DNA of 64,000 bases from assembly GCF_964204645.1 (NCBI RefSeq), contig NC_134034.1:13095062-13159061 (forward strand), written 5' to 3'. Source of the DNA: Tubulanus polymorphus. Its lineage: Eukaryota; Animalia; Nemertea. The notes beneath the pieces were generated by a model, which made no database searches, was not told the origin of the DNA, and saw nothing but the letters and a program-made list of their open reading frames with translations. Shown piece by piece: positions 260-22,500 of this stretch. Positions within the stretch are counted from its first letter, which is position 1; the number at the start of each line of letters is the position of its first letter. The position numbers were made by a program, and so were the translations under genes.

Positions 260-3200
260 CTTAATTTCAGTTTTTCCGCGCTGTTCCACTGCAAACATGT
301 CCGTTTTCTCTAACATTCTCGCTGTTCTGGCGCTGATGTGGATGCGATTTGCTGCAATGGAAAGGTTCCGAGCATAATCTATGATAAATAGTTGAAAATC
401 AATGAACTCGGTAGCGTTGGGACTGCTGTAAATATTTCACCGAGTTGAGAATCAGGGAACTCGGTAGCGTGTTGAGACTGCTGTAAATATTTCACTGAGT
501 TGAGAATCAGGGAACTCGGTAGCGGGTTGGGACTGCTGTAAATATTTCACCGAGTTGAGAATCAGAGAACTCGGTAGCGTTGGGACTGCTGTAAATATTT
601 CAAACCTAGGTGTTCATCCCAAAGAATATTTTTTTTGCTGTGTGCCAATTTCCTGATGAACTTACGTAAACCTTGTGACTCCATACGCGAGGCCGTGTTG
701 ACCGTATCCCCGAACAGGCAATATCGAGGTAAAGCTGTGCCCACAACACCGGCTACAACAGTTCCTACAATAAGTGATAATATTGAGGAGACCCATTATA
801 GAACATTTAAAAGATTAAACACTCCTGATGATGGGGGAGAGGGAGAGGGAGAGGGAGAGGGAGAGGGAGAGGGAGAGGGAGAGGGAGAGGGAGAGGGAGA
901 GGGAGAGGGAGAGGGAGAGGGAGAGGGAGAGGGAGAGGGAGAGGGAATTAGCTTTTTAACAGGGAAGGATCACTTACCGGAGTGTATTCCTATTCGGAGA
1001 GACAATTTACCGGAAGTGTCGAACTCTTTTTCGGAAACTACCTTCATGACATCCAGGGCCATCCGGGCTATTTCTGATACGTGACGTCGCCCGTTATGTT
1101 GCGGCAGACCTAACGATATTCATTTCAATATTCGGTATTCATTTCACGTGAAAAACATAAAGCAAAATCCGGAAAAAGGTAAAAACGATTTATCAAAAAC
1201 TATTCAGAAATTGAGAATCGAATAGTAAGGGTCAGGCTAGAAGAGCGCTTTCCACCCAAGCCTGCAATGTCTTCTACTCCACAAACGTAACCCACGAGGA
1301 TGAAAATTCACCATTTTCAAGAGCTATTTCCTCCAGATATTGTGCATTTGAAAGTTGTAGAAGGCAGCGGGGGCAGAGAAACCCTTGGCAATTACGAGTC
1401 AAACATCGATCGATTAAAGACCCTATCAATAACTCTGTTAGGCATTGAAAAGTGCTTGTCAGTCCCAAGTGAAGTCAGTCCCAAGTGAAGTCAGTCCCAA
1501 GTGAAGTCAGTCCCAAGTGAAGGATTCTAACATTGTACGCCGGCGAGTCCCAAAAACATGGCGCCTGGAAACTATAAAAAGGCGTGTTGGATATAACAAT
1601 ATTTCCAAAAAGGGCATCATTTCTACCAAAATTCCTCGGAGGGAAGGGGGGGGGGCTTAAAAACATCGAAGATGCACTGATCGGGTCAAAGTTAACAGTA
1701 ACCGGGTCTTGGCGTTTACTTACCCGATGCTACCATATACTTATCCCCGACCGTTTCCACTTTATAAACGTCGTACAAGTCGATCCTCTCGTCCAGAAGA
1801 CTGTACAAATTACCCAGCAAACCGACGATTTCGATGGGAACCATTTTCGCCGTGATCTTGTTGAAACCGGCGATTCCCGTGAACAGTATCGTCGCCTCTC
1901 GAAAATATTCGGCGTTCACTTCGCGATGGTACTTCAACTGTTCGGCCACCGTGCGCGGCAACATTTGATACAGCAACGAATCGGTGAGTTTCTTCTCTTC
2001 GTTTAGTTCTCTCGTCTTGTCGGCTAAAGTCAACGCGTACCGTTGCATGTCGTTGGTAATTTTGACGACCAGTTTCGTTTCGATCGGACTGATGGCCAGC
2101 GCTATGATGATCATCACGCAATTTAGAACCAGCGACCGATCCGTGGATGATATCTTCTGATCAATGGCGTCGGTTATGACGTCAGCCAGCTTAATTTGCA
2201 TACTCAACAGGGCGTTGATGTATTCGGTCATGTCGTCGAACCAATCGGCGGCCATTTCGTGCGACGTGCCGGTCGTGTTGCGATTTTTGATCTGATATCG
2301 ATACGACTTGATGCGCTTTTCGACGTCTATGCCCGACTGGTTCGTGATGGCGTTCGACACTTCGGTGACGATGCTCGAATAGTTTTGCGCGCCGCGGAAA
2401 AACGTCACGTAGCTGTGATAGCGGTTCATGTAGAAGGTGAAATTGTCGGTGTCGGCGAATCCGTTCATGGCGAAGAATATCGTACCCATCGCCCTCTCGG
2501 CGCCGCATTCGTCTTTACTGGCCAGAATCTTCTGATAGGCGACCATCGGCCGCCATAGCAGGCCACTGCCAGTGGCTTTAATGGCGTCGTATAGCCAGTG
2601 AACGAGAACGGACTGGATTTCCGAGTAGAATATGATTTCTTCGGTGATCGTTTGCGAAGAGTTCAGGTCCTTGCGCCCGATCTCGTTGCGGTGTTTCGCC
2701 AGGTGAGCGATGAACGAGTATTTGTTTTTGAACTCGGGTCGGGCGATCAGGTCTGGGTTCTCCGGCCAATTCGGGATCGTGGCCACCTATTGGTAAACGA
2801 GAGAGTTATCTTTAAAAGCGCGATACGGAACTGTCACAACAAGGTTTGACTAGTCACCCGTCACAACATGGCGGAGGGGAAATTGCAACACAGTTATTCA
2901 CCAGATGGCGTGACGAGCATTCGATATATTGTCTGTGGGGATGTAGCTCAGTGGTAGAGCGCCCGCTTTGCATGCGGGAGGCCCGGGGTTCGAAACCCCG
3001 CATCTCCAACGATACCTGTTACAGTTACAGTAATATTGATTTTTATAAATGTTTTATCTTCTATGTACCTGGTGGAATCCTCGATTGTCACATGAGCGAG
3101 TTTCCCAGTCTCGCGATACCACCGGGTTCGAATCCCAGCGTCTCCACTTGTGGATCATGACGTCTATGTCTATGGGAACAGTGTGCGTACAACGACTATT

Positions 3201-5622
3201 TTTTCTACGTACCTGTGCGTCGGTGCTGGCCCAGAGAGCGTGCAAGAACTGGTTTGTATTCGGTCCGATCGAACTCAAATAGAACGCCGACATGTCGCGT
3301 TCCCGCTGCAGCTCGTGCAGCAAAGTTCCGATTTGTATCGAGAACTCCACCGTGTTCTTAGCCTGGGTAACAATAATAATAGTAACACAGGTCACTAGAA
3401 TGAAACAATGCCGATTTCGCAAAGAATTACTACACCGTCCCAGGTCAAATTAAACCCACACGACCGTGTCGAATTAGATCCATGGTCAAGTCGGGCCCAC
3501 GCAACTGGATATTGGGTGAAGGTGCGAGTCAAATTGAACAGATAGGATATACCCACACAACTGTGGAACTGGGTTTAGGGTAAAAATGAAACCCACAAAA
3601 CTGTAGAACTAGATCCAGAGTCACAACTGTGGAACTGGATCCACATTCAAATATTAAACCCGCATCACTGTGGAACTGGATCCAGAGTCAAATTAAACCC
3701 GTACATCTGTGGAACTGGATCCAGAGTCAAATTAAACCCGTACAACTGTGGAACTGGGTCCAGAGTCATATCAAAGACCCACACAATTGTTGTATCCACA
3801 GTAAAATAAAACCCACACAACTGTGGAACTGGGTTCAGCATCGAATTCAATTGTACACATGTAACTGAAAGAAATAAAGACGCGTCTAGCGCAAACTTAC
3901 TGAAGATAAAGTGATACGAGCTTCTGTGTTGATCACCAGTGAGTAAGTGATAACGCAAACCAATGCAACTGTCGGCACCAAGGTGATACTGAGCATTTTC
4001 ATCAATTGTTTGCGCTTTCCGGACTCCGACAAAGGATCCGGAGGCTTGCACGAGAAACCTATCGATAATCATTAGAAACGGATTTAATAATATTATCACG
4101 TGTATCAATGATAAATTGGATCTATTGGAATCTAAATGAATTTAATAAGACTTATTACAGTTTCCGGGCGCTGTTTTTGGGTACCCCTGGGTCCGCATTG
4201 TTGAATCTTATAATGTTTGTTGTCCCTATTTTTTCTAATTTTCTTATTTCTATTTCGTTCGTATCTCTGGATAGGATGACGATAGAAACGAAGTGAAAAT
4301 ATCGATCAAATTACTAGATCGGGTGCACAGGTACATGCGCAGGTACATGCGCACGAAAACTTGCCGCATCAATCAGATTGCCTGTTGCGTAATCGTTGAG
4401 GCAAATTTCACAGATATCAACTATAAATTGAAACCCGTGATAAAATGAAACGGGATATCTGACTGGCTAATATTGACATCATCTAAGCTTCGTATGCGGC
4501 TACGCACCCGGTCTAATGTGGAGAAGGGCTCGAATCCCTACTAGGGGAGGATGTGACAAAACTAACTTCAAAGCTACACCTGTTACCAACGGTCAATTCT
4601 GGTCAACAATGTCAACATTAAATTACCGAATATGCCAAGTTGATCGCTGCTAATGTTTTCCAGTATATCATCAGATATTTCACCGCTAGGTGTCTCCGAG
4701 GTAATTTCTCGCAGTTCGACTTGTTCGTTGACCGTCGATACCTTTCTGACTAACCCCGCTGCGACCGTCAACGCGTGATCTGAAAACACGAAAATATGGC
4801 GTCGGGATTCGAAAGTTTAAGAGAGTATTATATTTTGGTCAGGAAATCATCTTCTTTATGAACGATTGAATTTCTACTTGTGTGGCAATTCTGCTCAAAC
4901 TGAATACCCCGCGTAGGCCTACCGCGCGGGATCAGATTCATGAATCCCTTACTTTCGGAATGTCTCTGACTTCCCGTCTTACTGTGCGATACTTGACGGC
5001 CGTGTTGTTCACTTGCAGGAACCGCTATCGAATTCTTTTCCAATCTCACCTTCGGCATTGCCGATGACGTCGATGCAATCGCCTGCTTAATACAACAAAA
5101 ACGAGGGTGTCTCAGAAAATATGTTACCAAACTTCTAAGATTAGTTATTCATTAACTATAATTGAAATGAATTTCTTATTTTTTTTTGGGGGGGGGGTAA
5201 ATTTGGTAGACCCGGGTGTTTTCTCGGGGTTGTAATGTTAAAATGCAACGATCAGCCACGCGTGGCTGAGCACTATCGTGTTTATGAATGGCCATGAAAA
5301 TTATGGAACCAAATAATCGAACCAAAAAATGATGGATTGTTCCATTGTGCATCGTAGGCCTATATTAGAAAACAACGATTGTTCGAAAAACCACGCTCAA
5401 AAGTGGCGGAAAAAGGCTAGAAAAATGACATCATCAATATATTTCTCCTAATCGGGCAGGTCATCTAGATAAACTACAAAGCGTAATCAGTTTATTTATA
5501 TCTATCGTGGGTGCTATAGTTTCATGTTTATATCGCCGAGTAACCAATGTTGTCAGTATCGGTGTACATAATTCCGATCTAAATACACACAGACACGTAA
5601 ACACCTTTTTTTCACCTACCAT
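260..5622 (-). CDS. NIT-domain receptor guanylyl cyclase (NIT-GC), multi-exon, 3' end outside the window
   Basis: Exons on the minus strand: 5622-5620 (ATG, tentative), 5082-4923 (tentative), 4779-4627, 4058-3901, 3362-3213, 2786-1724, 1109-978, 764-666, 351-260. All introns are GT-AG, phases match, and the total is 2010 nt (670 codons). The protein has TM1 ([23 protein letters not shown]), NIT-type motifs [12 protein letters not shown] and [13 protein letters not shown]2, a coiled coil ([15 protein letters not shown]) and a class III cyclase ([48 protein letters not shown]). The Glu and Cys guanine-specificity residues are present. Confidence 0.9.
403..602. repeat. 55-bp satellite family with internal inverted repeat, about 3.5 copies
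   Basis: Unit GCTGTAAATATTTCACCGAGTTGAGAATCAGGGAACTCGGTARCGTGTTGGGACT; same family at 9437-9474 and 34972-35505. Confidence 0.9.
833..945. repeat. (GAGAGG)n microsatellite
   Basis: Pure hexamer run in an intron; source of the spurious GE-repeat ORF 635..1084. Confidence 0.95.
1458..1521. repeat. 16-bp tandem repeat GTCAGTCCCAAGTGAA x4
   Basis: Direct reading. Confidence 0.9.
2937..3008 (+). tRNA. tRNA-Ala(TGC): tRNA-Ala, anticodon TGC, intronic and antisense to the NIT-GC gene
   Basis: Complete cloverleaf: acceptor GGGGATG/CATCTCC with the G3-U70 alanine determinant, D arm GCTC/GAGC, anticodon arm CCCGC-TTTGCAT-GCGGG, T arm CGGGG-TTCGAAA-CCCCG, discriminator A. A T-run terminator lies near 3040. 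Confidence 0.96.
3070..3146 (+). pseudogene. Degenerate tRNA-like remnant
   Basis: T-arm/B-box CCGGGTTCGAATCCCAG followed by CGTCTCCA, a tRNA-like 3' end; the 5' half does not fold. Confidence 0.55.
3437..3850. repeat. 39-bp satellite family (AAATTAAACCCACACAACTGTGGAACTGGATCCAGAGTC), degenerate array
   Basis: Repeated CAACTGTGGAACTGG core. Other arrays at 23255-23700, 42040-42320 (reverse) and 46385-46585 (reverse); fragments at 33070-33165 and 34530-34600. Confidence 0.85.
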
Positions 5623-6652
5623 TTTCTTTTTTTTGTCAGCCTTTGCGAGCAGTGGTGATCCGGCCGCGGCCGTGTGGCGATGAGTTTGGATTCAGCGTAA
5701 TGAATTTCGACACGCGCTCACGCGGTGCGCGATGCGTTATTAGTGAGTAGACTGCTGTGATTCAGTAATTTCCGGCTGGTCGAAATTCTATCCTCGCCTT
5801 CATCAAACCAGACCGCGGGAGCCAGCCGACTGTCGTGTGATGACCGTCCATCTTAAGTTAGCCCCGGATTTTGACCGGAGAAGACCTATCTTGTATAATG
5901 AATAAATCAGCTTCAGAAAGAATGCTGGTGTGTCTGGTGTTTGTAGTTCAATTTCTATCAATGTATCGAAGATCGCAGGGCCATGGTTAGACCGGGCAAA
6001 TGATTCTGCCGATGAAGAGTTTTTCATGAAGGTTTTTTTTTTTTAAAAAAACCCCAGCTAGACCTGCTCCCATTGCCTCAGATAACGTGTTTTGGAATGG
6101 ACTATGAAACAGCTTTGTGCTTCTAAAACATTATGATCCGTATCAGCGACTCAATCAACCTCAATCACCGGAAACCGTGGTCTCAAATAGCCCTACGAGC
6201 CTTCGAAATGCAACAATATTAAAAAGACTCTTTGGGGAAGACCCCCAACCTCTCAAACTATAAGGTGCGAATTCTTCCCCAGATTGACACCTTCCTTCTA
6301 ACCGATAGTTCGTCATATCCAGTTTGAAATCATTTAAATTGTCTTCTTTGGGATGAAATCCTAGGTTTGTAATAACTGATAAATCTTCATATTCGGGGTA
6401 GTTATAACGAGGTTCCACTGTTCACTGTATTCGATAGGACGTTTCCAATGGGGGGGGGGGGGGGGGGATTCCAATTCCGTAGATTCCAAGCGAAAAACGA
6501 GCAATAGCGAAACGATAAAAATAAGCCATAGCACTATCTTTGAACTTCATACCCTTTTTTCTTGTTTTATTTAAAAAAATCTTTTAAAAATGCTCATCGT
6601 ATTAGACTAAAATTAAAAATACATTTCAACTAAAATATTGTCATCGAGATCG

Positions 6653-9600
6653 TCATCTATTGTCCGCTTCCGGTACTGACGACGGTTTCCGGTATTTACA
6701 CTGCACCCAAACGCGATACATTTTCAACTGGCGCCCTCTATTGACCTGCAGTCGTCGATCAACCAGATTCTGTTCTTCGACGAGCCCGGCTTTAGTGAAC
6801 ATGTCCCGCAGTTCGTCTGCAATAAATGACAATACACACTTTGAGAACATGCGGACTGATCTGATACTGCAACTTAGGCTAAAAAAATGATACCTTGTTT
6901 CTCCGCTCTGCTGAGCTTAAAAGTTGACCCTGTCGGCCGCCTATCTACCCTATACATTACTTTTTTAAAATCGTGATCAATTTTACCATAACAGACCCGG
7001 CCGCTATAGACATGAACTGTTTACAAATTTTATCATATCTTACAAAAATGACCCGGCCGCTGCGGAGAAACAAGGTATCATCATTTTTGTTTAGCCTTAT
7101 ACTTCGTGCTTTCAGCCCCTGCATTGCCAACTGCCCTCTTCAAATTAACATTTTTAAAAGTAATCGGGGAAAAAGAATTCCTGGTCAAAATGTACCGATT
7201 TACTCATTCACCATTTTTAATTTTCTATTCGTCAAAATTGAAGGAGTTTCTGGCGTTTTGATGAAAAATTTAACTACAGTCAACCCCCGGATATACCACC
7301 CTACCATACACCGCCACCCCGCCTACCACCAAGTTTTCTCAATGTACATTTCAGTACAAATACATAATAGTAAAACACCCCCGATATACCACCCTACCAT
7401 ACACCGCCACCCCTGCCTACCGCCAAGTTTTCTCAATGTACATTTCAGTACAAATACATAATAGTAAAACACCCCCGATATACCACCCTACCATACACCG
7501 CCACCACTGCCTACCGCCAAGTTTTCTCAATGTACATTTCAGTACAAATACATAATAGTAAAACACCCCCGATATACCACCCTACCATACACCGCCACCC
7601 CTGCCTACCGCCAAGTTTTCTCAATGTACATTTCAGTACAAATACATAATAGTAAAACACCCCCGATATACCACCCTACCATATACCACCACCCCCGCCT
7701 TCTCAATGTACATCTCTATACAAATACATAGTTAAACATCCCCAATATACCGCCCTCCCATACACCGCCACCCCACCTTCCCGTACATCTTTATACAAAT
7801 ACATAGTAAAACACCCCCGATATACCGCCATACTCTCTATACCGCCAAAATCGTATATCGGGGGTCGACTGTAGTTTCGAGGACCTCTAAATGCAATTTC
7901 CGTTCAGAATGAGTTCATTTTAGGAATGAAGGAGTCGTAGGGACCCGATGCGTATTTTTCGTGCGATACCTTGCGTGAAAAAATAAACACGAGTTCCGTC
8001 GCCTCGTACGTAGAAATTATCGGACAAACATCGGCCTTTTTTGAAACGCAGCTGAGCGAGATCGTAACGACCGTAATCACGAAACACGATTAGACCACCG
8101 GGTTTTAAACAGCGACTCAAACGATTTATACTGCTCTGCATTCTGAAAAAAACAGAAAAACCAATTAAGAATACTTTAATCATGAGTACCCAAACTTTGA
8201 CAGTCTACTGTATTTCTCAAATTCTTACTCAGTATTTGACACCAACTCTGGGTAGAATTTTACCGGTCTCAACTTTACCGCAGTAAGAGACAGAGTCTAC
8301 TGTATTTCACAAACTCTTACTCAGTATTTGACACCAACTCGGGGTAGAATTTTACCAGTCTCAACTTTACCGCAGTAAGAGACGGTCAGAGTCTACTGTA
8401 TTTCACAAACTCTTACTCAGTATTTTACACCAACTCGGGGTAGAATTTTACCAGTCTCAACTTTACCGCAGTAAGAGACAGAGTCTACTGTATTTCACAA
8501 ACTCTTACTCAGTATTTGACACCAACTCGGGGTAGAATTTTAACAGTCTCAACTTTACCGCAGTAAGAGACAGAGTCTACTGTATTTCACAAACTCTTAC
8601 TCAGTATTTGACACCAACTCGGGGTAGAATTTTACCAGTCTCAACTTTACCGCAGTAAGAGATAGAGTCTAATGTATTTCATAAACTCTTACTCAGTATT
8701 TGACACCAACTCGGGGTAGAATTTTACCAGTCTCAACTTTACCGCAGTAAGAGACAGAGTCTACTGTATTTCATAAACTCTTACTCAGTATTTGACACCA
8801 ACTCGGGGTAGAATTTTACCAGTCTCAACTTTACCGCAGTAAGAGATAGAGTCTACCGTATAAAACAAACTCTTACTCAGTATCTCACAACAAAGCATGA
8901 ACACCAGAATATTTCCACAACCCTCCAACTAATCTAAATTCCTGGTTGTTACTCACTTGTCGGGATGAATAGCTGACAGGACGAATATAAGAACGATGAC
9001 ATCAATGGATCGGTCCGGAAACGGTAACGGAGTCGTTTCATCGGTTAAATCGTAAACAAAACCATAACATCTTTTCTCATTATATTCATTGTGTTCCTAA
9101 AAAATAACCGTGTACAGTTTAGAGGACTGCATTAATTACGCTCTCGGCACCCAGTTCCATATTTGTGACATGATCCCTACAGACCAGTCATTCCTGGATT
9201 TTAAAGAGTTGACAAGGAGTTTGGAAATGAACTTTGATTTAACTCAAGCCTCAGAGTCCAAGGGGTCAGATTTTAAATGAGAACTTCGGAACTGGGGCCT
9301 GATTTCTTATCTGCGTACCTTGACTAGCTGTATGGCGGATTTGGCGAAATCGCAGCAATACACAAATAAACCGGGATCGCTAAAAAAAAGATTAAAAATA
9401 CATAAATAAGATGATTTTTAAACATTTTCAGCACCTGCTGTAAATATTTCACCGAGTTGAGAATCAGGGAACTGGTGAGGTTAGGACGAAGTATTATTTC
9501 ATAGAGTTAAGAATCAATCTAACACACTTTATAGATTATCAAAATCGCAGACGTACTCATTAGTTTGTAAGACAGGAAATACAGTGTTGCCGACACCGCA

Positions 9601-10929
9601 TCCTACTTCCCAAACACGATAACTAGCATTACAACCCGGGTAAACATCACTAGACGTCACAGGAGCAGACACAACAGGGCCAGGAGCAGATGTCGTAGGA
9701 GCAGACGCCTGAGGAGCAGACGTCACAGGAGCAGACACCTGAGGAGCAGACGTCACAGGAGCAGACGCCTGAGGAGCAGACGTCACAGGAGCAGACGTCA
9801 CAGGAGCAGACATCACAGGACTAGATGTCACAGAAGTCTCTTTCTCCTCTCCCACGTTGACTTTGCGCGGAATTTTTTCGAGCGTCAAATTCGGAGCGAG
9901 TTCGGGAAATTCGGTGAACAGCCAGTGACGATCTTTGAAGAAACGATTTTGATGCTGTTCGTAGAATTCGTGCCAAAACCGGTCGGCGTCGGTTTCGTAT
10001 TCGGCTTGAAACGACAGAAATGAATATTTAGATACGAATGGAAGATAATTATCAGAGATTCAAAGATCTTACTTTAAAACATGTATTGTAATATGGCACT
10101 TCATTGATTTTCAAATAACATGTACCTATTTTTTCATTCGGAAGAATTACTTCGCTGTTCTCGGCTATTTTACCCTCAGCTGCCACAGTCTGCTCCTCAT
10201 CCCATTCGACATTATCCCTGATGGATAAAAAATAAAATTTGCCATTGATGTAATCAGGTTCAAATCCCTGTGAGGGAGGATGTGTCTACTAGGACAGGGG
10301 TTTGTACTGTAACAGAGTCTCATGATGTCATCAGGTTCAAATCCCTGTGAGGGAGGATGTGTCTACTAGGACAGGGGTTTGTACTGTGACAGAGTCTCGT
10401 GATGTCATCAGGTTCAAATCCCTGTGAGGGAGGATGTGTCTACTAGGACAGGGGTTTGTACTGTGACAGAGTCTCACGATGTCATCAGGTTCAAATCCCT
10501 GTAAGGGAGGATGTGTCTACTAGGACAGGGGTTTGTACTGTAACAGAGTCTCATGATGTCATCAGGTTCAAATCCCTGTGAGGGAGGATGTGTCTACTAG
10601 GACAGTGGTTTGTACTGTGACAGAGTCTCGTGATGTCATCAGGTTCAAATCCCTGTGAGGGAGGATGTGTCTACTAGGACAGGGGTTTGTACTGTAACAG
10701 AGTCTTATGATGTCATCAGGTTCAAATCCCTGTGAGGGAGGATGTGTCTACTAGGACAGGGGTTTATGAGGACGAATATTTACCAGGCGTTGTGCTCGAA
10801 TACGTTCTTCTCTCCGGTCAGGAATCTATTCCCGAACTGTGGGCGCTTATTCTGCTCGTCCTGAGTCCCTTCCGAATGGCTCAGATCACCAACAGGGACA
10901 GTGCCATCGGTCGCTGCTTTCGATGACAT
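6653..10929 (-). CDS. METTL2: tRNA N3-methylcytidine (m3C32) methyltransferase, METTL2 family, 7 exons, 407 aa
   Basis: Exons 10929-10784, 10217-10126, 10004-9557, 9379-9319, 9096-8957, 8142-7970, 6816-6653; all GT-AG, total 1224 nt, in frame. Motifs: [51 protein letters not shown] (SAM motif I), [72 protein letters not shown]. Confidence 0.96.
6877..7096. mobile_element. PIF/Harbinger-type (Tourist-like) MITE, about 220 bp
   Basis: TIRs GGCTAAAAAAATGATACCTTGTTTCTCCGC ... GCGGAGAAACAAGGTATCATCATTTTTGTTTAGCC; 3-bp TSD TTA (6874-6876, 7097-7099); near-identical copy at 51979-52199. Confidence 0.85.
7277..7871. mobile_element. Tc1/mariner (pogo/Tigger-like) MITE containing an internal 93-94 bp tandem array
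   Basis: TIRs CAGTCAACCCCCGGATATAC and GTATATCGGGGGTCGACTG, flanked by TA on both sides; internal units start at 7290, 7383, 7477, 7571, 7665. Confidence 0.8.
8202..8885. repeat. 92-bp satellite family, about 7 copies (reverse orientation to the other arrays)
   Basis: Unit AGTCTACTGTATTTCACAAACTCTTACTCAGTATTTGACACCAACTCGGGGTAGAATTTTACCAGTCTCAACTTTACCGCAGTAAGAGACAG, in a METTL2 intron. Confidence 0.95.
10254..10765. repeat. 77-bp satellite family with tRNA B-box motif, about 6.5 copies
   Basis: Unit contains GGTTCAAATCCC; fills most of METTL2 intron 1. Confidence 0.95.
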
Positions 10930-11307
10930 CACTCTTGACAATCTGAAATATGTGAAAATGAAACTGGGCATCTTTTGACAAAACTTAATCAATTAAATGA
11001 AAGTTTCCACCATTGATTTGGTAATGATCTAGCGCAATAGACAGCAGTCCAATAAATTTCGGTTTTTATAGTTAGTCATGACCTGTCGTCGAAGCAAATA
11101 ATCGAAGGCCGTATAGTTCAGCATTTCACATGTTGGCCATCCTGTTGGGTGACTGCCTTCAATCCTGTGGTTGAATAGTTCCGACAAACTGACGTGATTC
11201 ATGGTGTCATTAAGTTTGCAATAAGTCTACAAAAACCGATGTTAGCCGTACACTATAGTCAGTAACCTGTCTGTGGTTTAGTTTCGCACTTGGAATTGGA
11301 TTGTCCT

Positions 11308-11378
11308 GTCCTGTGGCATGGTGGATAAGGTGTTGGACTCACAACTGAGAGGTTGAGGGTTCGAATCCTAGTGAAACC
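11308..11378 (+). mobile_element. tRNA-derived SINE head (Pol III A and B boxes)
   Basis: TGGCATGGTGG (A-box-like) and GGTTCGAATCC (B box) at tRNA spacing; stems do not form a full cloverleaf. Confidence 0.55.
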
Positions 11379-11999
11379 ATGCATTCAGATAGGACACATA
11401 TCAGTGCCGGTCGACTCACGGATTTAACAACAAAAGTCCGTACCTGGCAAATATCTTCAACATGTTGAAGTTGCCCAGTAATAGGTAGGTAGGTAGAGGA
11501 ATTGGATATTTTCACAAATATTAGCCCTACTTACACACACCTACCTATCAATAATTATTGGTAACAATTGTGTTTTTCGACCAACCAAAGATTCTCTTAT
11601 TGAAATATAATTAGATCTCACAAACAGCGATGACAATGACATGACATATTATCGACGAAACGTACACATTTTCTGAAAAACGTCCAATATATTGTTAATT
11701 GAATTGAGCTTTACAAGTAGAATCGGGCGATTTCCTATTGATTTATTAAATCAACTAAGTTTTGAAGGCTCATCTTTTTCGAGTATCATTTCAACTAGGC
11801 TATTTGCCGTCAGATCTCACCGAACTAAGCTGGTTTGAAAGATATTTCCGTCTAGCGAGGGAAAAATGTGACACCGTACTATGTTACAATAAATTATGAA
11901 TTGGGAATTGAATTTGTGTTTTCCGTATCAAATTCGAATTAACTTTATTATGAAAACCCATAAATCACAACAAAATGTAATACACAAGACAAAAGTAAA

Positions 12000-12420
12000 A
12001 CGGAGCAAAGAGCGAAGACAAAACGTTACTTAAACAATTTTACTAGTTTTATCGGAAGATATAACTGGGGAAATCCCACACAAAAAAACCGAGCCGGCAC
12101 CCGCGGCGTCGACCGGACCTGCAACAGCTCAAAAGTCCGGTCCATGCGTCTTAAATACAACCTCAAGGTCGTCGAGCGTGTTGTTTTTCTGTGGATAAAT
12201 TGCGGAAGCCAATAATAACCATATTTATAAGGTGAGGCAGTGGTGGAATCAGCAGCAGATTCGAATCCATTCAATTTTAATTTCTGACATTTTAGTTAGG
12301 CGACGGAGGAGCAAAGGTGTTGAATATTCCATTCCATTTCCGGCAGTAGCGTGACGTTGTCTCACAAAATGGCCGCTTTTTCAATTGCTGGTTAGGGAGG
12401 CTAGGCCGTAGGGTTAGGCT
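12000..12420. promoter_or_regulatory. Probable bidirectional promoter between METTL2 (-) and the C7orf25 homologue (+)
   Basis: CpG-rich segment between divergent genes, with clustered ETS-like TTCCGG, CRE-like TGACGT and YY1-like AAAATGGCCGC motifs at about 12338-12378. Both start codons are preceded by splice acceptors, implying non-coding first exons in this interval. Confidence 0.5.
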
Positions 12421-13414
12421 ACAGATGAAGTTAAAAAGATTTTGAATTGGAATGTGGCCGTTTTAGTTTTAGTGGTTAAAATGCTTACAAGCACAGTGGT
12501 ATGTGCATGCTTGAATCCCCGTTTTGACGCTGTAAACGCAGTAAGCCTACAGTACGATATGCGTATAACTACTATGCGTTATGAGGTTCTGTTGGAGCCG
12601 TGCACTACGTCGTCAATATCGACGTTTCAAAATTACAATTAAAATAGCGAATTTCGGCATTTCAATTTCTCAGGTTATAAATATTTCATAACGCTTAATT
12701 TATATTTGATCACATTTTGTTTAATATTTTTGAGAGTATGTGCAGAACGTAGACTGGTTACCGGTCTCTACCTGCAGTTAGACTGGTTGCCGGTACCGAA
12801 TTCAATTCAATTATTGAAATATTCAAATCGAAAGTAGAGCTTTATTGATCCCAAATATCATATCATATGAATAATATTATATTATTTCGTCGACGTAATA
12901 CATGTGATATTTTTTTTAAGGTGTCAATAAAGTAGTTCCTTGTTATAGTTATTAGGTAGAAGTGAATTCAACTAGCGAAGACCTAGTAGAAACCACTGAC
13001 TGACCGTGCGGTTTAAGCCCTTTAAAGAACTTTTTGATTCACTGGTTGAGGATTTAGTAAAAGCACTCCCTAGGATTTATGAACATAATGAATGTGAACT
13101 ATGATGTCTCTTGCTGGTGGAGCGGCCCGGGTGCGTATCGTCACCTATTGGAGGCCACCGGCATCCCTCACATGGCCAGAAGGTGAATCTTACACTACAG
13201 ATGATGAACTCATTACAAATTGAATTGTGGTTTACGAAATTACCCGGCCCATTAGGAGAAACAACGCGTCATGTTATTTTAACCCTTTGATTTTCAATAA
13301 GATTGTCTGCTGAAAAATGTTGGCGTTAAGCGTTTTGGCGTTAAGCGCCTTTCGGCAGCAGCGTTATAACGGACTTTGACCGTATATATGCCGTATCTGT
13401 TGTAGATATAGATT

Positions 13415-13555
13415 ATGATGTCCAGTTGTGTAACGCTAGAGGATCACATTGTTTGGGCCGAGCTGTTGATTTCGCGTTGTAACGAACTGTCGGCGGTCCG
13501 CGGCTGTAACAAACTACATCGGAAAATATCGGCCGAATTGAAGTTTCTCAATAAG
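13415..13555 (+). CDS. C7orf25: First coding exon of the C7orf25 homologue
   Basis: [47 protein letters not shown] followed by donor AAG|GTAAGC (phase 0). Confidence 0.82.
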
Positions 13556-16500
13556 GTAAGCAGAAGAGACGACTGTCAGAAATCAGCTATAGAAAGAGTC
13601 GGATCCTGGTGGTGGTGGCAGCAGCGCAGTGCGTTTAATGGCCTCGTGTTAATTGTAAACCGCAAGACGCAGTGTAGTGCGGCATATACATTTCTTTTAG
13701 TTATTTTTATTAGATTATTATCATTATTATTACTATTTAAGAGTATTCATAAAGCAATTGCAAGGATTCAGAAATGCTCAGCGGATACGGTGCAAAGTAT
13801 GGCATAGTCCGGCTTGTATTAATTCTGACCCCCCCCCCCCTTTAAAAGATCCCAGTGACGACCCTGAAGTTAGTTTTCTCGTTGAGGCAGGCTCGTTAAG
13901 TTATGTTGATAGCTCGGAACTAGCATTTTGTCCTAAATAGGTTCTCGTTATGACTGCAGTGAACTGATATAAATCTCAGTGTAGAGTTTACAAATAAAAA
14001 CCAACTGTAGAAACAGTTTATATCCTTATAGTTTCGAGGTTAAAACTAAGCGAAAAAAAATTTTTTAAATTTTTTTTTGATCCTCTGAAGATGTAGTTTT
14101 AACCTCGAAGCTGTAAGGAAATAAACTGTTTCTACAGATCAGGTTTTTATTCGTTAGGTTGTCGTTAAATCGCCTTTAAATGAACTCGAGAATCGATCGA
14201 TTTCGCGCCGGTGTCAGGTTCTTCCACGGTGGAATTTATTAGCCTAATTTTCCCCCGATCAGAAGCGACGGCGCGCGCAACACACGGTTGAACGTACGTT
14301 CCTCGATGCCTGGATGGTTTATTGCGGCGCGCGCATGTTCTTATTTCTCTAATCCGCGGAGAGATTGCGCGCGGGCCCAATCAATAATGCCGGCCGTAAA
14401 TCAGAATATTCCGAGTACACCAGTAATTAATGATGAAGAAAAAATGATCGTCTGCCTCGTGTGTGATCGCCCCTAGCAACGGGAGTAAACAATTTCTCCA
14501 TCCCGCGATATCGCCATAAACTAAATTCAACCCGGGCTAATATTTCACGATTTCGGTCGACGGGTGACGGGTAACTTCTGTTAATGCTTTCTCGTAAAAT
14601 TGATAAAGCCTCGATTCAGTCTTCAGAGAGATGGAAGGAAATATGACCGATTTATGTTTCTTTCTGCCGAGGGATTTTCAACCTGATAGACATCGTGAAT
14701 CTGTTTTTGTAACAGCGCAAACCTCACTGCTCTAGTAGGGATTTGAACCAGATGGCATCACGAGACTCTGTCACAGTACAAACTCCTGTCCTAGTAGACA
14801 CATCCTCCCTTACAGGGATTTGAATCTGATGACATCATGAGACTCTGTCACAGTACAAACCCCTGTCCTAGTAGACACATCCTCCCTCACAGGGATTTGA
14901 ACCTGATGACATCGCGAGACACTGTCACAGTACAAACCCCTGCCCTAGTAGACACATCCTCCCTCACAGGGATTTAAACCTGATGACATCATGAGACTCT
15001 GTCACAGTACAAACCCCTGTCCTAGTAGACACATCCTCCCTCACAGGGATTTAAACCTGATGGCATCATGAGACTATGTCACAGTACAAACCCCTGTCCT
15101 AGTAGACACATCCTCCCTCACAGGGATTTGAACCTGATGACATCGCGAGACTCTGTCACAGTACAAACCCCTGTCCTAGTAGACACATCCTCCCTCACAG
15201 GGATTTAAACCTGATGGCATCACGAGACTCTGTCACAGTACAAACCCCTGTCCTAGTAGACACATCCTCCCTCACAGGGATTTAAACCTGATGACATCAT
15301 GAGACTCTGTCACAGTACAAACCCCTGTCCTAGTAGACACATCCTCCCTCACAGGGATTTAAACCTGATGGCATCATGAGACTATGTCACAGTACAAACC
15401 CCTGTCCTAGTAGACACATCCTCCCTCACAGGGATTTGAACCTGATGACATCGCGAGACTCTGTCACAGTACAAACCCCTGTCCTAGTAGACACATCCTC
15501 CCTCACAGGGATTTAAACCTGATGGCATCACGAGACTCTGTCACAGTACAAACTCCTGTCCTAGTAGACACATCCTCCTTCACAGGGATCTGAACCTGAT
15601 GACATCACGAGACTCTGTCACAGTACAAACCCCTGTCCTAGTAGACACATCCTCCCTCACAGGGATTTGAACCTGATGACATCGCGAGACTCTGTTACAG
15701 TACAAACCCCTGTCCTAGTAGACACATCCTCCCTCATAGGGATTTGAACCTGATGACATCGCGAGACTCTGTCACAGTACAAACCCCTGTCCTAGTAGAC
15801 ACATCCTTCCTTTACAGGGATTTAAACCTGATGGCATCATGAGACTACGTCATACAGATCCGCCTTTTACCGTAAAATAAAAAAAGGAAGTAAAAAAATG
15901 CATTTGATAATATAAATAATATATCGTTTTTATTTTTGAAATATTTATTTACATATACAGTTATAAGTTCGTATAGGGAGACATTTTTAGAAAAATTCCA
16001 TTTTAAGATTCTCAAAAAAATCAAGATAGTTATGACCGACTCTCGGGTTTTGGAACGTTCGTAGAATTACCGCCGCCAGAGGGCGTGACCGACTGGTTTA
16101 GAAGTTTCGCCCGAGCTTTAACCCTGGGAATCACATCTGAACCAGGGTTCTCACGGGTTTCGAAAAGTCTTGGAAAGTTCGGGAATTTTTTGACCTTGGG
16201 GCAATCGCGACCACTTCGAAAAAGACGGCGTTGTATAATTCACCGGCTCAGTGACGCCATCTGACGGTTGGGTTGTTTAAACACTGACGATATAGAAATG
16301 CACCTTGATCTTATAGTCGAAATTGCGTACAAATTGAAAAAAATTATCTAGACTATTTCTATGCCGGATCGATGATGTAAACAGTTACTAATTCGTTTCG
16401 TTAGAAATGGTTACTAATTAGTTACAGCCACTACGTTACTAAATTAATAATACGAGTAGATGTTTGGAATGTTATTATGTCCTGATATTCTATCCAGATT

Positions 16501-19500
16501 TTTTTTACGACAAAGTCTAGATGTAAATCGACAACACGTATATACTTTTCACGTCGCGGAGTGCAATCGATAAATAAATCAATAAATCAATAAATCAATT
16601 TAAAAAAATACGATAAACAGAATTGACACAAATAAAAACGATTATAATTTAGAAAGAAGAGAACCACAAAATTACTCTAGAATTCATCTGGTTCGTACAA
16701 CAGGTTTAGGTTAAGGGGGCTGATCCATGGGGGGAGGGGGGCACAAGGAGTACGCGCTCCCGTCCCGCGCCCTTTTGAGAATACAATGGAAATATTTTTC
16801 CATTTATATTGCTATAAAACGACCCCAAAAACAGCGTTTTCCGCGAGGTACTAGCGAACGGAGTCTACTGAGTCATCATACGGTGTTAGTAGTGAAATAA
16901 GAAAATAAATGCTACAAAATATTAGTAGATGTTTGTCTAAACTAAAATCAACTATAAAAAAAAATCTACTAAAATATATATTCATAGTATTTTTGGGACC
17001 GCCTTTTAGATTTAAAGGAGTTTAAAAAGTTTGAATCGATTTGTAGAACTGATTAATGATATGTCGGAATTTGTTTTCAACGGTTTACGAAGATTCGTCT
17101 TGAGCGGAGTCAACTTTATCATCCAACTCAGATATCACTGTCAAGTCAAAAGATCAGACTTGAGCGGAGTCTACTGTATCATCCAACTCAGATATCACTC
17201 TCAAGTCAAAAGATCAGACTTGAGCTGAGTCTACTGTATCATCCAACTCAGATATCACTCTCAAGTCAAAAGATCCGACTTGAGCGGAGTCTACTGTATC
17301 ATCCAACTCAGATATCACTCTCAAGTCAAAAGATCCGACTTGAGCGGAGTCTACTGTACCATCCAACTCATATATCGCTCTTAAATCGGATACATTAACA
17401 CGGCCTGAAAACAAACACTATGACTTGTGTTCTATTTATTCGTGATGATTTATTGTCAGGAGAGTTGTCAAGTCGAATACTTCACAGTCACTTTCTCGAG
17501 ATGTTCAAGGAATTGATTTGCGAGGAAGACATTACGAGGCCTACGAGATTTCCAGAGACTGCGGTCAATGATTTCAGTGTTAGTGAAATAATCGCCATCG
17601 TTTCAAATCTATTAGGGTAGAAATATGTACATTAGAAACTATAGGAACCTATATTGCCGACACAAGCATTAAACGATATTGGATTCGCAGATATGCATGT
17701 ATGAAGAAAATTTTCAAAAAGCAGATTTTGAAATGACTGTCTTGTGAAGAGTATTCACCTAAAACGGCTAAAAATTATATCTTCTCTTCATCCGCTGGGT
17801 CATTTTTTAACTGCAATATAGATTGTGATCAGTTCATTTCTATTACTGCCGGGTCTGTTATTATTATCTCGATCTGATATGAAAAGCGGTCGGTAGAAAT
17901 GAGAGACAAGGTATCAATGTTTTGTCTTGATACGTCCATTTCTACAGACACCCAAATTGCTAACACAAGTAATCGGTAGCATCCTATTAAAGATTAATCG
18001 TGCCTATTAACAGATTTAACGATAAGAATTATAACTATCTTAAACATTGAAATTGATTTAAGTTCTTACAAGCTACAACTATTTACAATTCGGTTGAATT
18101 TGTGCGTGGAGTTTCTCTCTCTCTGACGAAGAAAGAATCGATGGCCGCCATCTCGTCATTTTCGTCAATCTTCAACCGGGCCCTTTTTCGCGCTGGCTGC
18201 TTCATTTTAATAATAATCATAACATCATAATATAATAACATAACAATGCATAATATTCCTTATATATATGTATAAATATAGATATATGATACACTAGATT
18301 CCCAATTCAATTATATACATGTTAGTTAAATGTAGCTAAAGCGACCGGCAAAATTGGGCAAACACTGCGACCGACCGGCAAAATTGGGCAAATACTGCGA
18401 CCGACCGGCAAAATTGGGCAAACACTGCGACCGACCGGCAAAAATTGGGCAAACACTGCGACCGACCGGCAAAATTGGGCAAACACTGCGACCGCAAGCT
18501 GGCTCTTGACACTATAGCTATATACGCGGATAAAATGTGAAGTCTATATAATCTACGCGTAGTACAATAATAATCGACCGCTCGATTCAAATCAATCTAT
18601 CGTTATTTTCTAGATTTCTGTATATTATAATTTGTCAGCAGTTTAATCCATTTTACCTCTGTCTCAAACATTGCGACTTACGACACAGCAAAAAAAGAAT
18701 CGTTTACGCCCATCATTTCAGACGTTTTGTTAATCATCGGTTTTTAGGCTTAAAAGTATGATACCTTGTTTCTCCAAATCAGCCGGGTCACTTTTGTAAA
18801 CTGCAATAAGACGTGTAATCTATAGCTGCCGGGTCTGTTATTGTTAGCCTGATCGTGATTTTAAAAACGTAATGTACAGGGTTGACAGGCGACCGACCGG
18901 GTCGACTTTTTAGCTAAGCAGAAATGAGAAACAAGGTATCATTTTTAGTCATCCATTCCGGCTGATTTCGTTCTCGGAAATTTCTACCTTTACAAAATTC
19001 GTTTTATCTCGCTTATTAAAGGGGACCGTCCATCCGGGGAACACTCCCCCTGAAATCATCGATATACCACTTTAACCTTGACCTGAATTATCGCACTTTG
19101 ACATTATTGATTTTCGAACGTTTCTTCTCGCTGACATTCTATTCACCTTGATCTCGATCTGCTGCGTTCTCGCCTTGACATTCACAGAGGACACGCAATA
19201 GCTTCTTATAAATTATTGATCGGATATATTGGTATTTCTTGCCGTTCGCGATGAAACGTATTCAAAGCACTATACGTGTTTTTAATTAAACGTTCACTTT
19301 TTGACCTTGACAGTGCACGAACCATCAGGTATCTGGAACATGTCATACAGTATTCACCCTCGTGCACAGCTGGTGATCGGAATTCGACAGTCGACCGTTC
19401 ATCGAATTCGGCGATTTTTTCATGTACACCCACGGTTTCGTCGTCGGCGGTGGCCCCGGTCCCGGAATTCTACCGCCAGGGGGCGGTAGCGCCGTGCCCG

Positions 19501-22500
19501 CGTCTAACGACCGTTGATACGGCAACGAAGCGATCGGACAGAAAACCGGCGACATGGCGTCGAGGGTCGGGGTGACCGGCTCGCGTTGTTCCTGCTCGTC
19601 GCGGCGGTCGTAGTTTTCGGCGGTATCGTCCGCAATAATTCGACTTTGCGACGTGCTCGGCTGCGGTTGGTTGTATTGAACAGTCTGCGGTGGGTATCGC
19701 TCCGAGGACAGCGGTAAACTACCGACGTCGCCCGGGTAGGTCGGTATGCTAAAACAGCGCGGGTTATGCGCGCAGATATGCATATGCGGCGCGACGTTGG
19801 CGCAGTGATTCATATTCGGCACCTCCAACATGACCCCGCCTTTATCGTTCTCCCAACACTCCTCGTGTATTTCATGTATCGTAATATCGCTGAATTCGCC
19901 GTGCGCGCCCGGGTGATAGCTACTCGATTCGGGATCGTGCGCCACCGAGTCGTACTGGCTGTCGAACTGGCTGTCGTATCGGCTGCTCTTACGACGAACG
20001 CGGTTGGTCATGTGACGTTGTTTACACTGCGACATTAACACGATTAATACGATAATTGCCAGGGCCAGGAAGGCGCCGATACTGCTGCCGATTGAGACCG
20101 GTATATGCCAGGTTGTAGTCATCGCGTCCATACAGTGCCGACTCGGCGAATCGACAGAACTCGAGTTGTTATAAAGCGCCAGACAGATCTTGTAGTTCGT
20201 GTTGGCCAGTAGTTTGTCGATGCTGTAATTCGTAGATTCCGGCGGTAACAGGTCGCTGTATTTCACCAGCGTGCTGCCGTATCGTTGGTAGTGCACCTTA
20301 GCGCCGATCAGGTTGACCGTAAATTCTCGGGTGATCGCCCATCGTATGTTGATGGTCGTCGCCGAAGCGCTGGCTAGTTCGAGGAATTGAACGATAGATG
20401 GCCCTGCCGTCGTCGACATCGTGTTCAGAAGGTTGAACATCTCGCGTGGCTTTACTTAACTGAAATGATATCGAAAACGAAAAAGAATGAGAAGATTGTT
20501 CGTGTCAACATTGTCGTTTAAAATACTCATTTCATCATTGAAATAACTTAAGTAGTTTCCTTTATAGAATAAGTAATCGATAAGGATTTTAATTGTAGTT
20601 ACTTTCACCATTGATATGATTGACTTCACTATCAGAAAATTTACGAACACTGGGCGGGGTGACCCCCTAAACCCCCTCCCCTCGGATCCGCCACTTCTAC
20701 GTGATTAGTTATCCGTTGCCATTTTTTTCTCGGCGGGTTTGAAGAAACCGATCTACTTCTTGACGGCCATTACCGCTCGGCTGTCGATTTGTGCTCAGTG
20801 CGATGATGTATTTTTTCTGCATCCCCGAACCGAGGTGAGGCTAATAGCAGATTGATTGATTGACAGCTCGTGGGAGGGACGTGTGTTTTTCTTTTTTCGC
20901 GGTTTTTTCCCCGTACGACTTGTCGGTCGCTAATCGATAACTTGATGAATGGAGCTCGGTACTATATACCTGCGCGTATTATCGGAAATCGATATTGGCG
21001 CCAGTAATAACACAACCGGTGAGCCGATTGCTTTACTTCTGCTATGTCCACATTTGGTATTAATGAAGTCAACAACAATCTCAGCCGTTCCTCGAATCGA
21101 AGTTCGTCGCCTTGCGGCTATTTTCATTAAACTTCACTAGTACGGATGCCATTTTTCTATTTTACTATTTTCACTATTTATCGAATTATCTCTATCAACT
21201 TTGAAATCAACATTCTCAGCTGCCCTTAAAATAGGACTACCCCGCCTCGCAGCATTTCCGCGATGTTTACAACCTCACTAGTACGGATGGCTGCCTGGCG
21301 ACCCTTTTTATTTAATTTTTTCACTATATCGACGGCAACGGTTCTCGGGCCCGGGTTCGAACTCCGGAATTACCATGCCTTGGTTCCGATTGCACTTTGT
21401 ATATGTTGTTTCTAGGGCAAATACCTAAATTTTTGTCGAGATTGAATTTCAACCTCGTCACTCAGCTATCAAGGTCATCTTCAAGGTCATGTCGGTGGAC
21501 AAAAGAGTTTTAGTGCCTAGTTCTGCCATTCTGGCTATAACATAGGTATGCCTCTATAGATATCTATGATGACATCTCAATGGTTGCTGCCTTGCGGTCA
21601 CTTTTAAATGAAAGCCTTTTTTAGCTATGACGAGACTTCATCGATTCTGAATATTGCTTTCGGCTGTGAAAATCTCGCATCAATTTCTGCCTTGCAACTA
21701 TTTTTGAAGTATGACCTAATCCATTGTGATGTTACAATGGCTGCTGCCTGGCGGCCATTTTGAAAAATTCAATTTTAGCTATATCGATATCGAATAGGTG
21801 TAGTTACTATTAAACATTCGATTACACTTTGACGATATCACGATGATTGCTGCCTCGCGGTTTTTTTTTAAAAATTTTTGAGAAGCTCAATCACGTTTCC
21901 GTAATCGATATTTTCGCATCGATCGGTCGGTGGCAAACAGCCTCCCCCGCGGCCATTTAAAAAAGAGTTGTTCGTCCTTTGACAACGGAATAACGAAGTA
22001 AACTTCGATTCGGTGCACTGGTTGATCCAATTATATTATGTGTATGCCTTGCGGCTGTCTTGAAAATCTACATGATTCGCGTAACCCCGACACCGTTTTT
22101 TTTCTCTATCTGAGTATAGCGCGATTGATCAATGATTCTGATATTCATCAATATTCAACTACAGCCTAGCTGGAATGATTCCCTGGTAAGCGAGTACGGG
22201 TGGTATTTTTCGATAAGATGCTTACGATGATCTACATTGTATACACTCGCTTGGTGTGTACACAATTTCATGACGCCGTAAAAACCGATACAATAATGTT
22301 TATATATACATTGATACCTATAGCATGCGACGGGGTTCTGTGTCAGTCGATGTGCACTACGTCATCGATATTGGCGTTTCAAAACAATCATTATAAGAGT
22401 GAATTGTTTTTATTTTGTTATAAAAAAGATATTTCAAAAGATATTATAAGTCTTATTTTGATAAATTTTAATCGTTGTTTTTGTGAGGAATCGGACTAAA

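Follow-up and report, generated by a model that had tools for sequence, protein, structure and literature searches.

A nemertean NIT-domain guanylyl cyclase with an sGC beta-1-type half active site, and reciprocally altered paralogues in the same genome

The active site of class III nucleotide cyclases spans a dimer interface, with a pair of metal-binding aspartates coming from one chain and a Glu/Cys/Asn/Arg set from the other. The C2 domain of mammalian adenylyl cyclase (AC) is a class III domain without the aspartate pair, which gives the base-, ribose- and phosphate-binding half of a site to its partner. The NIT-domain guanylyl cyclases (NIT-GCs) were reportedly described only in 2020, and only one of them is said to have been shown to respond to nitric oxide (NO). 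For soluble guanylyl cyclase (sGC), the two aspartates of the alpha chain bind the metals and Arg552 of the beta chain binds phosphate, both aspartates are described as essential for metal coordination, and homodimers lack activity, the necessary residues being divided between the two chains (PMC3591389). ODR-1 and DAF-11 of Caenorhabditis elegans form an obligate heterodimeric receptor guanylyl cyclase, whose single site is said to draw essential catalytic residues from both chains (PMC5225109). The NIT-GC family and half-site heterodimers in sGC, AC and ODR-1/DAF-11 are already known; in the searched papers that use the term NIT-GC, including PMC7400543 and 10.1101/2023.08.02.551600, defective half-sites or heterodimers are not discussed for this family. 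Here we describe LOC141911637, a NIT-GC gene of the palaeonemertean ribbon worm Tubulanus polymorphus on the minus strand of a 64,000-nucleotide stretch (NCBI RefSeq GCF_964204645.1, contig NC_134034.1, positions 13,095,062 to 13,159,061; hereafter the window, to whose positions coordinates refer unless a chromosome or other region is named). Its cyclase domain carries the half-site of sGC beta-1, and the same genome holds paralogues with reciprocal changes. What appears to be new is an alpha/beta-type split inside the NIT-GCs that is conserved across several phyla.

The first cyclase strand of LOC141911637 reads [13 protein letters not shown] (also given as [15 protein letters not shown]), and the second metal site reads VETVGDKY (1760-1737). 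Two short features hold the residues in question:

1875 to 1877, minus strand: GGA codon for Gly503, at the position of the first metal-binding Asp
1740 to 1757, minus strand: ETVGDK, with the guanine-selecting Glu543 (1757-1755), the second metal Asp, Asp547 (1745-1743), and Lys548 (1742-1740)

The exon at 764-666 encodes [18 protein letters not shown], which contains Cys613 (720-718), Asn620 (699-697) and Arg624 (687-685). In total, Glu543, Asp547, Arg592 of the RIG motif, Cys613, Asn620 and Arg624 are kept. In alignments with PDB sequences, the Gly503 column holds Asp in human GC-A (FSDIVGFT) and Gly in human sGC beta-1 (FSGIVGFN), and the second motif is ETIGDAY in GC-A vs. ETVGDKY in sGC beta-1; the two motifs of LOC141911637, ILF-G-I-GFN and ETVGDKYM, match sGC beta-1 letter for letter. 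A sequence-only reading of the window had noted the GGA glycine codon at 1877-1875, VETVGDKY at the second site and an intact guanine-selecting Glu and Cys and catalytic Asn and Arg, and had identified the Gly/GDKY combination as the sGC beta-1 pattern. Translation and the PDB alignments agree on each point, the alignments placing both beta-1 features at the same columns, and the interval that it marked (666-1900) begins where the cyclase domain starts in the large exon and closes with exon 7. Asp occupies the first metal column in nearly all of the NIT-GCs among the first 94 matches. Compared with a self-sufficient homodimeric class III cyclase, LOC141911637 has the Glu/Cys/Asn/Arg set and lacks one of the two metal aspartates; because site residues come from both chains, a homodimer would have two defective sites.

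Across the 268-Mb Tubulanus genome, 12 NIT-GC genes were recovered as NIT matches with adjacent cyclase exons, and seven site residues (Asp1, Glu, Asp2, RIG Arg, Cys, Asn and Arg) were scored in splice-aware GT/AG models of each. Four genes proved beta-like, four alpha-like and four complete:

Beta-like (two of four), LOC141911637 and its twin on chromosome C4: G E D R C N R
Beta-like, further decayed (two of four), two convergent genes at 1.01 Mb on chromosome C2: G E S Q C N R, with the whole metal/phosphate half gone
Alpha-like (four), at 0.84, 28.81 and 28.82 Mb on chromosome C2 and 6.33 Mb on chromosome C7: D E D R C, then T or S, then K or I
Complete (four), two genes at 2.08 Mb on chromosome C7, one at 29.35 Mb on chromosome C1 and one at 23.8 Mb on chromosome C2: all seven residues

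Thr and Lys also stand at the Asn and Arg columns of human sGC alpha-1 (NNVTLANKFES) and of the Tubulanus sGC alpha chain, and the Tubulanus sGC beta chain has Gly at the first metal Asp. The AC C2 exons of Tubulanus read IGSTYM. A search of the genome for a complementary paralogue had been proposed on the basis of the window alone, and it turned up the four alpha-like NIT-GCs, which keep the Asp pair and alter Asn and Arg; the three on chromosome C2 are LOC141900864, LOC141899152 and LOC141899153. The two convergent sisters on chromosome C2, at 1008833-1010400 (+) and 1012300-1013750 (-) (L042 and L043), have a fuller beta/C2-type half-site than LOC141911637 itself, with Asp1>Gly, Asp2>Ser and RIG Arg>Gln and with Glu, Cys, Asn and Arg kept. 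A further cyclase domain at C7:15395770-15396312 (L006) has lost several site residues (strand 1 ALELNN; end TALTLMY).

Taken from these residues, LOC141911637 is probably a substrate-half (beta-type) subunit that needs the Asp pair of a partner. A ligand would bind its extracellular NIT domain, and the protein would bring Glu and Cys for guanine selection, Asn for ribose binding and Arg for the transition state to one composite site, whose Asp pair would come from an alpha-like NIT-GC (Asn>Thr/Ser, Arg>Lys) or from a complete one. One site would then work and the other would be a degenerate pseudo-site, as in sGC and mammalian AC C1/C2. Like mammalian AC C2, LOC141911637 would then supply a substrate half only; in the adenylyl cyclase both domains belong to one polypeptide, whereas the NIT-GC halves are encoded by separate receptor genes. 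That the chains pair physically and are co-expressed, and which partner and which ligand are involved, are points that we infer. The sequence-only reading had suggested that the protein is an obligate heterodimer: the complementary paralogues exist, whereas the pairing itself stays a proposal.

An active homodimer would also have to be considered, one in which Asp547 and another acidic or backbone group bind enough metal and Gly503 does no more than adjust activity or the choice of metal. In keeping with this, LOC141911637, its C4 twin and the homologue from the nemertean Lineus longissimus all retain the second metal Asp and the RIG Arg. We nevertheless regard it as quite improbable, given that both aspartates are held to be essential for the metal (PMC3591389), that sGC beta-1, which has the same Gly and a kept second Asp, is inactive as a homodimer, and that the sister genes on chromosome C2 have lost Asp2 and the Arg too, which shows that the metal half is dispensable in this clade.

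The minus-strand gene, as read from the sequence, has nine exons, eight of them inside the window, and all of its introns are GT-AG. The translation of this model is an exact match to NCBI P0239 (LOC141911637, Tubulanus polymorphus, 723 aa):

4923 to 5058, minus strand: exon 1, with the start codon at 5058-5056, a predicted cytoplasmic N-terminal extension and a GT donor; matches P0239
4627 to 4779, minus strand: exon 2, N-terminal extension, AG/GT borders
3901 to 4058, minus strand: exon 3, first transmembrane segment, residues about 119-141 (hydropathy scan)
3213 to 3362, minus strand: exon 4, start of the NIT domain, LQRERD helix (Pfam NIT positions 2-38, E 2.5e-6)
1724 to 2786, minus strand: exon 5, remainder of the NIT domain, second transmembrane segment, signalling coil and first half of the cyclase domain, to MVASG
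978 to 1109, minus strand: exon 6, middle of the cyclase domain, with Arg592 of LRIG at 996-994 (Pfam Guanylate_cyc 70-108)
666 to 764, minus strand: exon 7, substrate half of the site (Pfam Guanylate_cyc 110-140, E 1e-11)
260 to 351, minus strand: exon 8, PNRIHIS...TEIK
271 to 459 bases before the window start, minus strand: exon 9, GKGEMVTYWLL... to the stop codon (L032:8604-8792 = C10:13094603-13094791)

In Pfam, exon 5 matched NIT (3e-14), the C-terminal coil of HNOBA (2.4e-8) and Guanylate_cyc (6.7e-16). The NIT domain (PF08376) was found on exons 4 and 5 and is flanked by hydropathy peaks at residues 119-141 and 417-437, and the Guanylate_cyc domain (PF00211) is C-terminal. A kinase-homology domain was not found, Pfam giving NIT, the HNOBA coil and Guanylate_cyc alone on the LOC141911637 exons. 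The protein is thus predicted to be a two-pass membrane receptor with an extracellular NIT sensor (transmembrane segment, NIT, transmembrane segment, coil, cyclase), the same layout as the published NIT-GC architecture (PMC7400543). It shares this order with the NIT-GCs of Moroz et al. (2020) and with Platynereis NIT-GC1 and NIT-GC2 (Jokura et al.), and belongs to the same family by tree; a NIT domain, two flanking transmembrane segments and a grouping with animal NIT-GCs in the trees all place it there. Platynereis has 15 NIT-GCs in all, and its NIT-GC1 and NIT-GC2 are co-expressed. As with ODR-1 and DAF-11, we are dealing with membrane guanylyl cyclases and with a complementary-defect paralogue, here present in the Tubulanus genome; ODR-1 and DAF-11, however, are nematode receptors with kinase-homology domains, whereas the NIT-GC case is a clade pair kept across several phyla.

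The likeness to sGC beta-1/alpha-1 covers a Gly for the first Asp, a kept second Asp, kept Glu, Cys, Asn and Arg, nearly identical FSGIVGFN and ETVGDKYM motifs, complementary subunits in the genome with Thr/Lys as in alpha-1, and the expectation of one active site and one pseudo-site. It ends at the architecture, since LOC141911637 lacks HNOB and PAS and is predicted to be a two-pass membrane protein with an extracellular NIT domain. The HNOB haem domain (PF07700) was not found by Pfam on the LOC141911637 exons, and the nine HNOB genes of Tubulanus all lie elsewhere in the genome. With the motif columns removed, the cyclase tree placed LOC141911637 with the NIT-GCs and outside the sGC clade (SH-aLRT 98), the cyclase-only tree (185 columns) being poorly resolved at depth. 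Of the features of an sGC beta chain, then, the half-site is present, and both HNOB and placement in the sGC clade are absent. The letter-for-letter match in both motifs might suggest that exon shuffling or gene conversion brought them in from an sGC beta gene. This we find scarcely credible: the stretch between and around the motifs is of receptor type (86 bits to GC-A vs. 68 bits to sGC beta-1 over the cyclase stretch in the PDB alignment), both motifs share one large exon with the NIT domain, motif-masked trees place the protein in the NIT-GCs, no HNOB was found, and intermediate states (GDTY, GSKY) occur in relatives. Descent or gene conversion from sGC was rejected on the bit scores and the motif-masked trees. 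We read the resemblance to sGC beta-1 as convergence, not descent, and on this point the sequence-only reading, which had proposed convergence on a beta-type site, was borne out by the masked trees.

Two base changes separate GGA from an Asp codon, and GGA is also the codon of the C4 paralogue, so that a single-base sequencing error is unlikely. This twin (P0095) is 80-83% identical to LOC141911637; between the two, the nonsynonymous divergence (dN) is 0.11 and the synonymous divergence (dS) is saturated (above 2), giving a dN/dS of at most about 0.03-0.09 throughout the large exon. Among 96 NIT-GCs, 95 columns are conserved at a level of 85% or more; LOC141911637 departs from the family at five of these and the twin at four. 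LOC141911637 is the faster-evolving copy, yet it is clearly constrained. A decaying duplicate, or an artefact of annotation or assembly, would account for the faster evolution, but is very improbable in view of nine intact GT-AG exons, a 723-codon frame identical to the RefSeq model, a low dN/dS despite the saturated dS against the twin, and the occurrence of GGA in the twin and of Gly in Lineus. A pseudogene was likewise rejected on the intact frame, the dN/dS, the five departures in 95 columns and the GGA of the twin. The Lys of GDKY is another matter: its column reads Thr in the twin and in Lineus (GDTY), the C2 genes have GSKY, and the column varies across the clade. This Lys arose on the branch of LOC141911637 itself, and we give a change so specific to one lineage little weight. 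The earlier argument for selection rather than decay therefore stands as to the shared Gly, the low dN/dS and the few departures at conserved columns, but not as to a coordinated second change, for which no support was found in the Lys of GDKY.

Homologues were sampled by searching the 50% representatives with the large exon (HMMER, profile-free) and by word searches with the C4 twin and an alpha-like paralogue as queries, the word search being blind to proteins longer than 1.75 times the exon; site residues were tabulated for approximately 400 proteins in all. Full-length trees were built as a quick version (96 rows) and a careful version (65 rows, three motifs masked). On the careful tree, LOC141911637 and its C4 twin group with support of 100/100. 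Together with the two C2 genes and Lineus longissimus P0097 they form a nemertean clade (100/99) in which all five members have Gly at the first metal position; Tubulanus and Lineus belong to different nemertean classes, and the Gly they have in common is thus old. The nemertean Gly clade is contained in a lophotrochozoan clade of 23 rows (100/99), here called beta-prone, in which Asn and Arg are kept in every row and a metal Asp is changed in 13. Gly occurs in the nemerteans and, independently, in venerid bivalves (Ruditapes, Mactra), Ser in Mercenaria, Dreissena and Mactra, and Glu in Babylonia and Littorina, with Asp2>Glu in Lingula; at least six changes to the beta-like state are needed on the careful tree. 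The half-site is a trait of a whole clade rather than one special to LOC141911637.

A second clade (100/100 on the careful tree) is alpha-like in 19 of 19 rows, with members from Capitella, Lingula, a chiton, gastropods and bivalves and including three Tubulanus C2 genes. The alpha-like and beta-prone clades come out as sisters with weak support (81/37). A similar pair was seen in ambulacrarians, where an Asn/Lys clade stands beside an Asp2>Glu clade. Such reciprocal clades, one retaining the Asp pair and the other Asn and Arg, are the pattern expected if members of both pair with each other; only one of the two symmetric sites is needed in a pair, and repeated loss of Asp in the beta-prone clade would therefore be expected. 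Another alpha-like variant occurs beyond Lophotrochozoa: in the NIT-GCs of crustaceans (crabs, lobsters, shrimps and barnacles; P0366-P0377), Arg>Lys goes together with Cys>Thr at the residue that selects guanine (PRYTLFG).

The clades also bear on the view that LOC141911637 is a pseudo-enzyme or brake, forming dead homodimers or poisoning complete NIT-GCs, and so serving as a ligand-binding scaffold or dominant-negative regulator. Several observations would suit such a role, namely the lost first metal Asp, two sister genes without Asp1, Asp2 and the RIG Arg, the faster evolution of LOC141911637 relative to its twin, and the existence of inactive sGC beta homodimers (PMC3591389). A protein that never catalyses would, however, have no reason to keep the substrate-half Glu, Cys, Asn and Arg, which are kept in 23 of 23 rows of the clade under strong purifying selection, and productive pairing gives the best account of the reciprocal alpha-like clade. 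We consider a brake unlikely.

Gene order in other lophotrochozoans links the two clades in places. In Haliotis rufescens, the beta-prone P0100 lies head to head with a 670-aa NIT-GC about 3.9 kb away (L053, 1-6133 on the minus strand and 10001-24871 on the plus strand). We take this neighbour to be the alpha-like P0265, with which it shares its length (670 aa) and its contig (990,008 bp) and to which a consecutive LOC number (LOC124112690) also points. Lingula anatina shows a comparable arrangement: the beta-prone gene P0242 and P0147 stand head to head (L055, 1-1556 on the minus strand and 10001-20548 on the plus strand), and we take P0147 to be alpha-like as well, its best matches all being members of the alpha-like clade. 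These head-to-head pairs, in a gastropod and a brachiopod, are 4-8 kb apart and may be relics of the original duplication, possibly sharing a promoter.

On a broader reading, which we hold more tentatively and somewhat short of probable, bilaterian NIT-GCs include an old alpha/beta-type system independent of sGC, with sister clades derived from a head-to-head pair that persists in abalone and Lingula, obligate heterodimers with one catalytic site and one pseudo-site, and repeated loss of metal residues (to Gly, Ser or Glu) on the beta side, LOC141911637 being a nemertean beta-type chain. If a large part of the family works as alpha/beta pairs, single-gene assays and knock-downs would mislead for those members. 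Were the broader reading true, the number of receptor types could grow by combining two NIT sensors, and the family would show for a second time, independently, how a symmetric cyclase divides into catalytic and substrate halves, and would thereby allow a direct test of why asymmetry evolves, e.g., to create an allosteric pseudo-site.

Several observations weigh against a paired beta-type role. LOC141911637 has neither an alpha-like nor any other cyclase neighbour; the nearest alpha-like gene and the two decayed beta-like genes are 170 kb apart on chromosome C2, a different chromosome. Adjacency of the two types is absent in four of six genomes: in Lottia, Lineus, Mactra and Mytilus, the 10 kb around the genes examined contain no such pair. 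From Lineus, though it has the Gly subunit, the word search with an alpha-like query retrieved nothing that belongs to the alpha-like clade, and that clade therefore cannot be the only possible partner. Chains of the alpha-like clade have Lys in place of Arg and might keep some activity. Platynereis NIT-GC1 makes cyclic GMP alone in COS-7 cells with an NO donor (10.1101/2023.08.02.551600), so not every member of the family needs a partner. Finally, the terminal branch of LOC141911637 is approximately 10 times that of the C4 twin (0.29 vs. 0.025-0.036 in the full-length trees), and given this long branch its role may be modified or partly relaxed.

Other features of the window lie within or beside the gene. 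ARAGORN called a tRNA-Ala (anticodon TGC) at 2936-3010 (+), inside intron 4 of the cyclase gene and on the opposite strand; a second tRNA-like stretch near 3095-3170 was noted by eye, without an ARAGORN call. Every intron in the 3' half of the cyclase gene holds a tandem array, at 1-202 (22-nt units, nine copies, extending before the window), 390-602 (55-nt, four copies), 835-946 (GGGAGA, 19 copies), 1458-1522 (16-nt, four copies) and 3556-3838 (39/78-nt, three to four copies). The next upstream minus-strand gene (6650-8200) encodes peptides that by eye resemble the C-terminus of a small-molecule methyltransferase; Pfam searches with two of its single exons gave no match. Its introns hold tandem arrays of 94-nt and 92-nt units (7283-7833 and 8202-8883).

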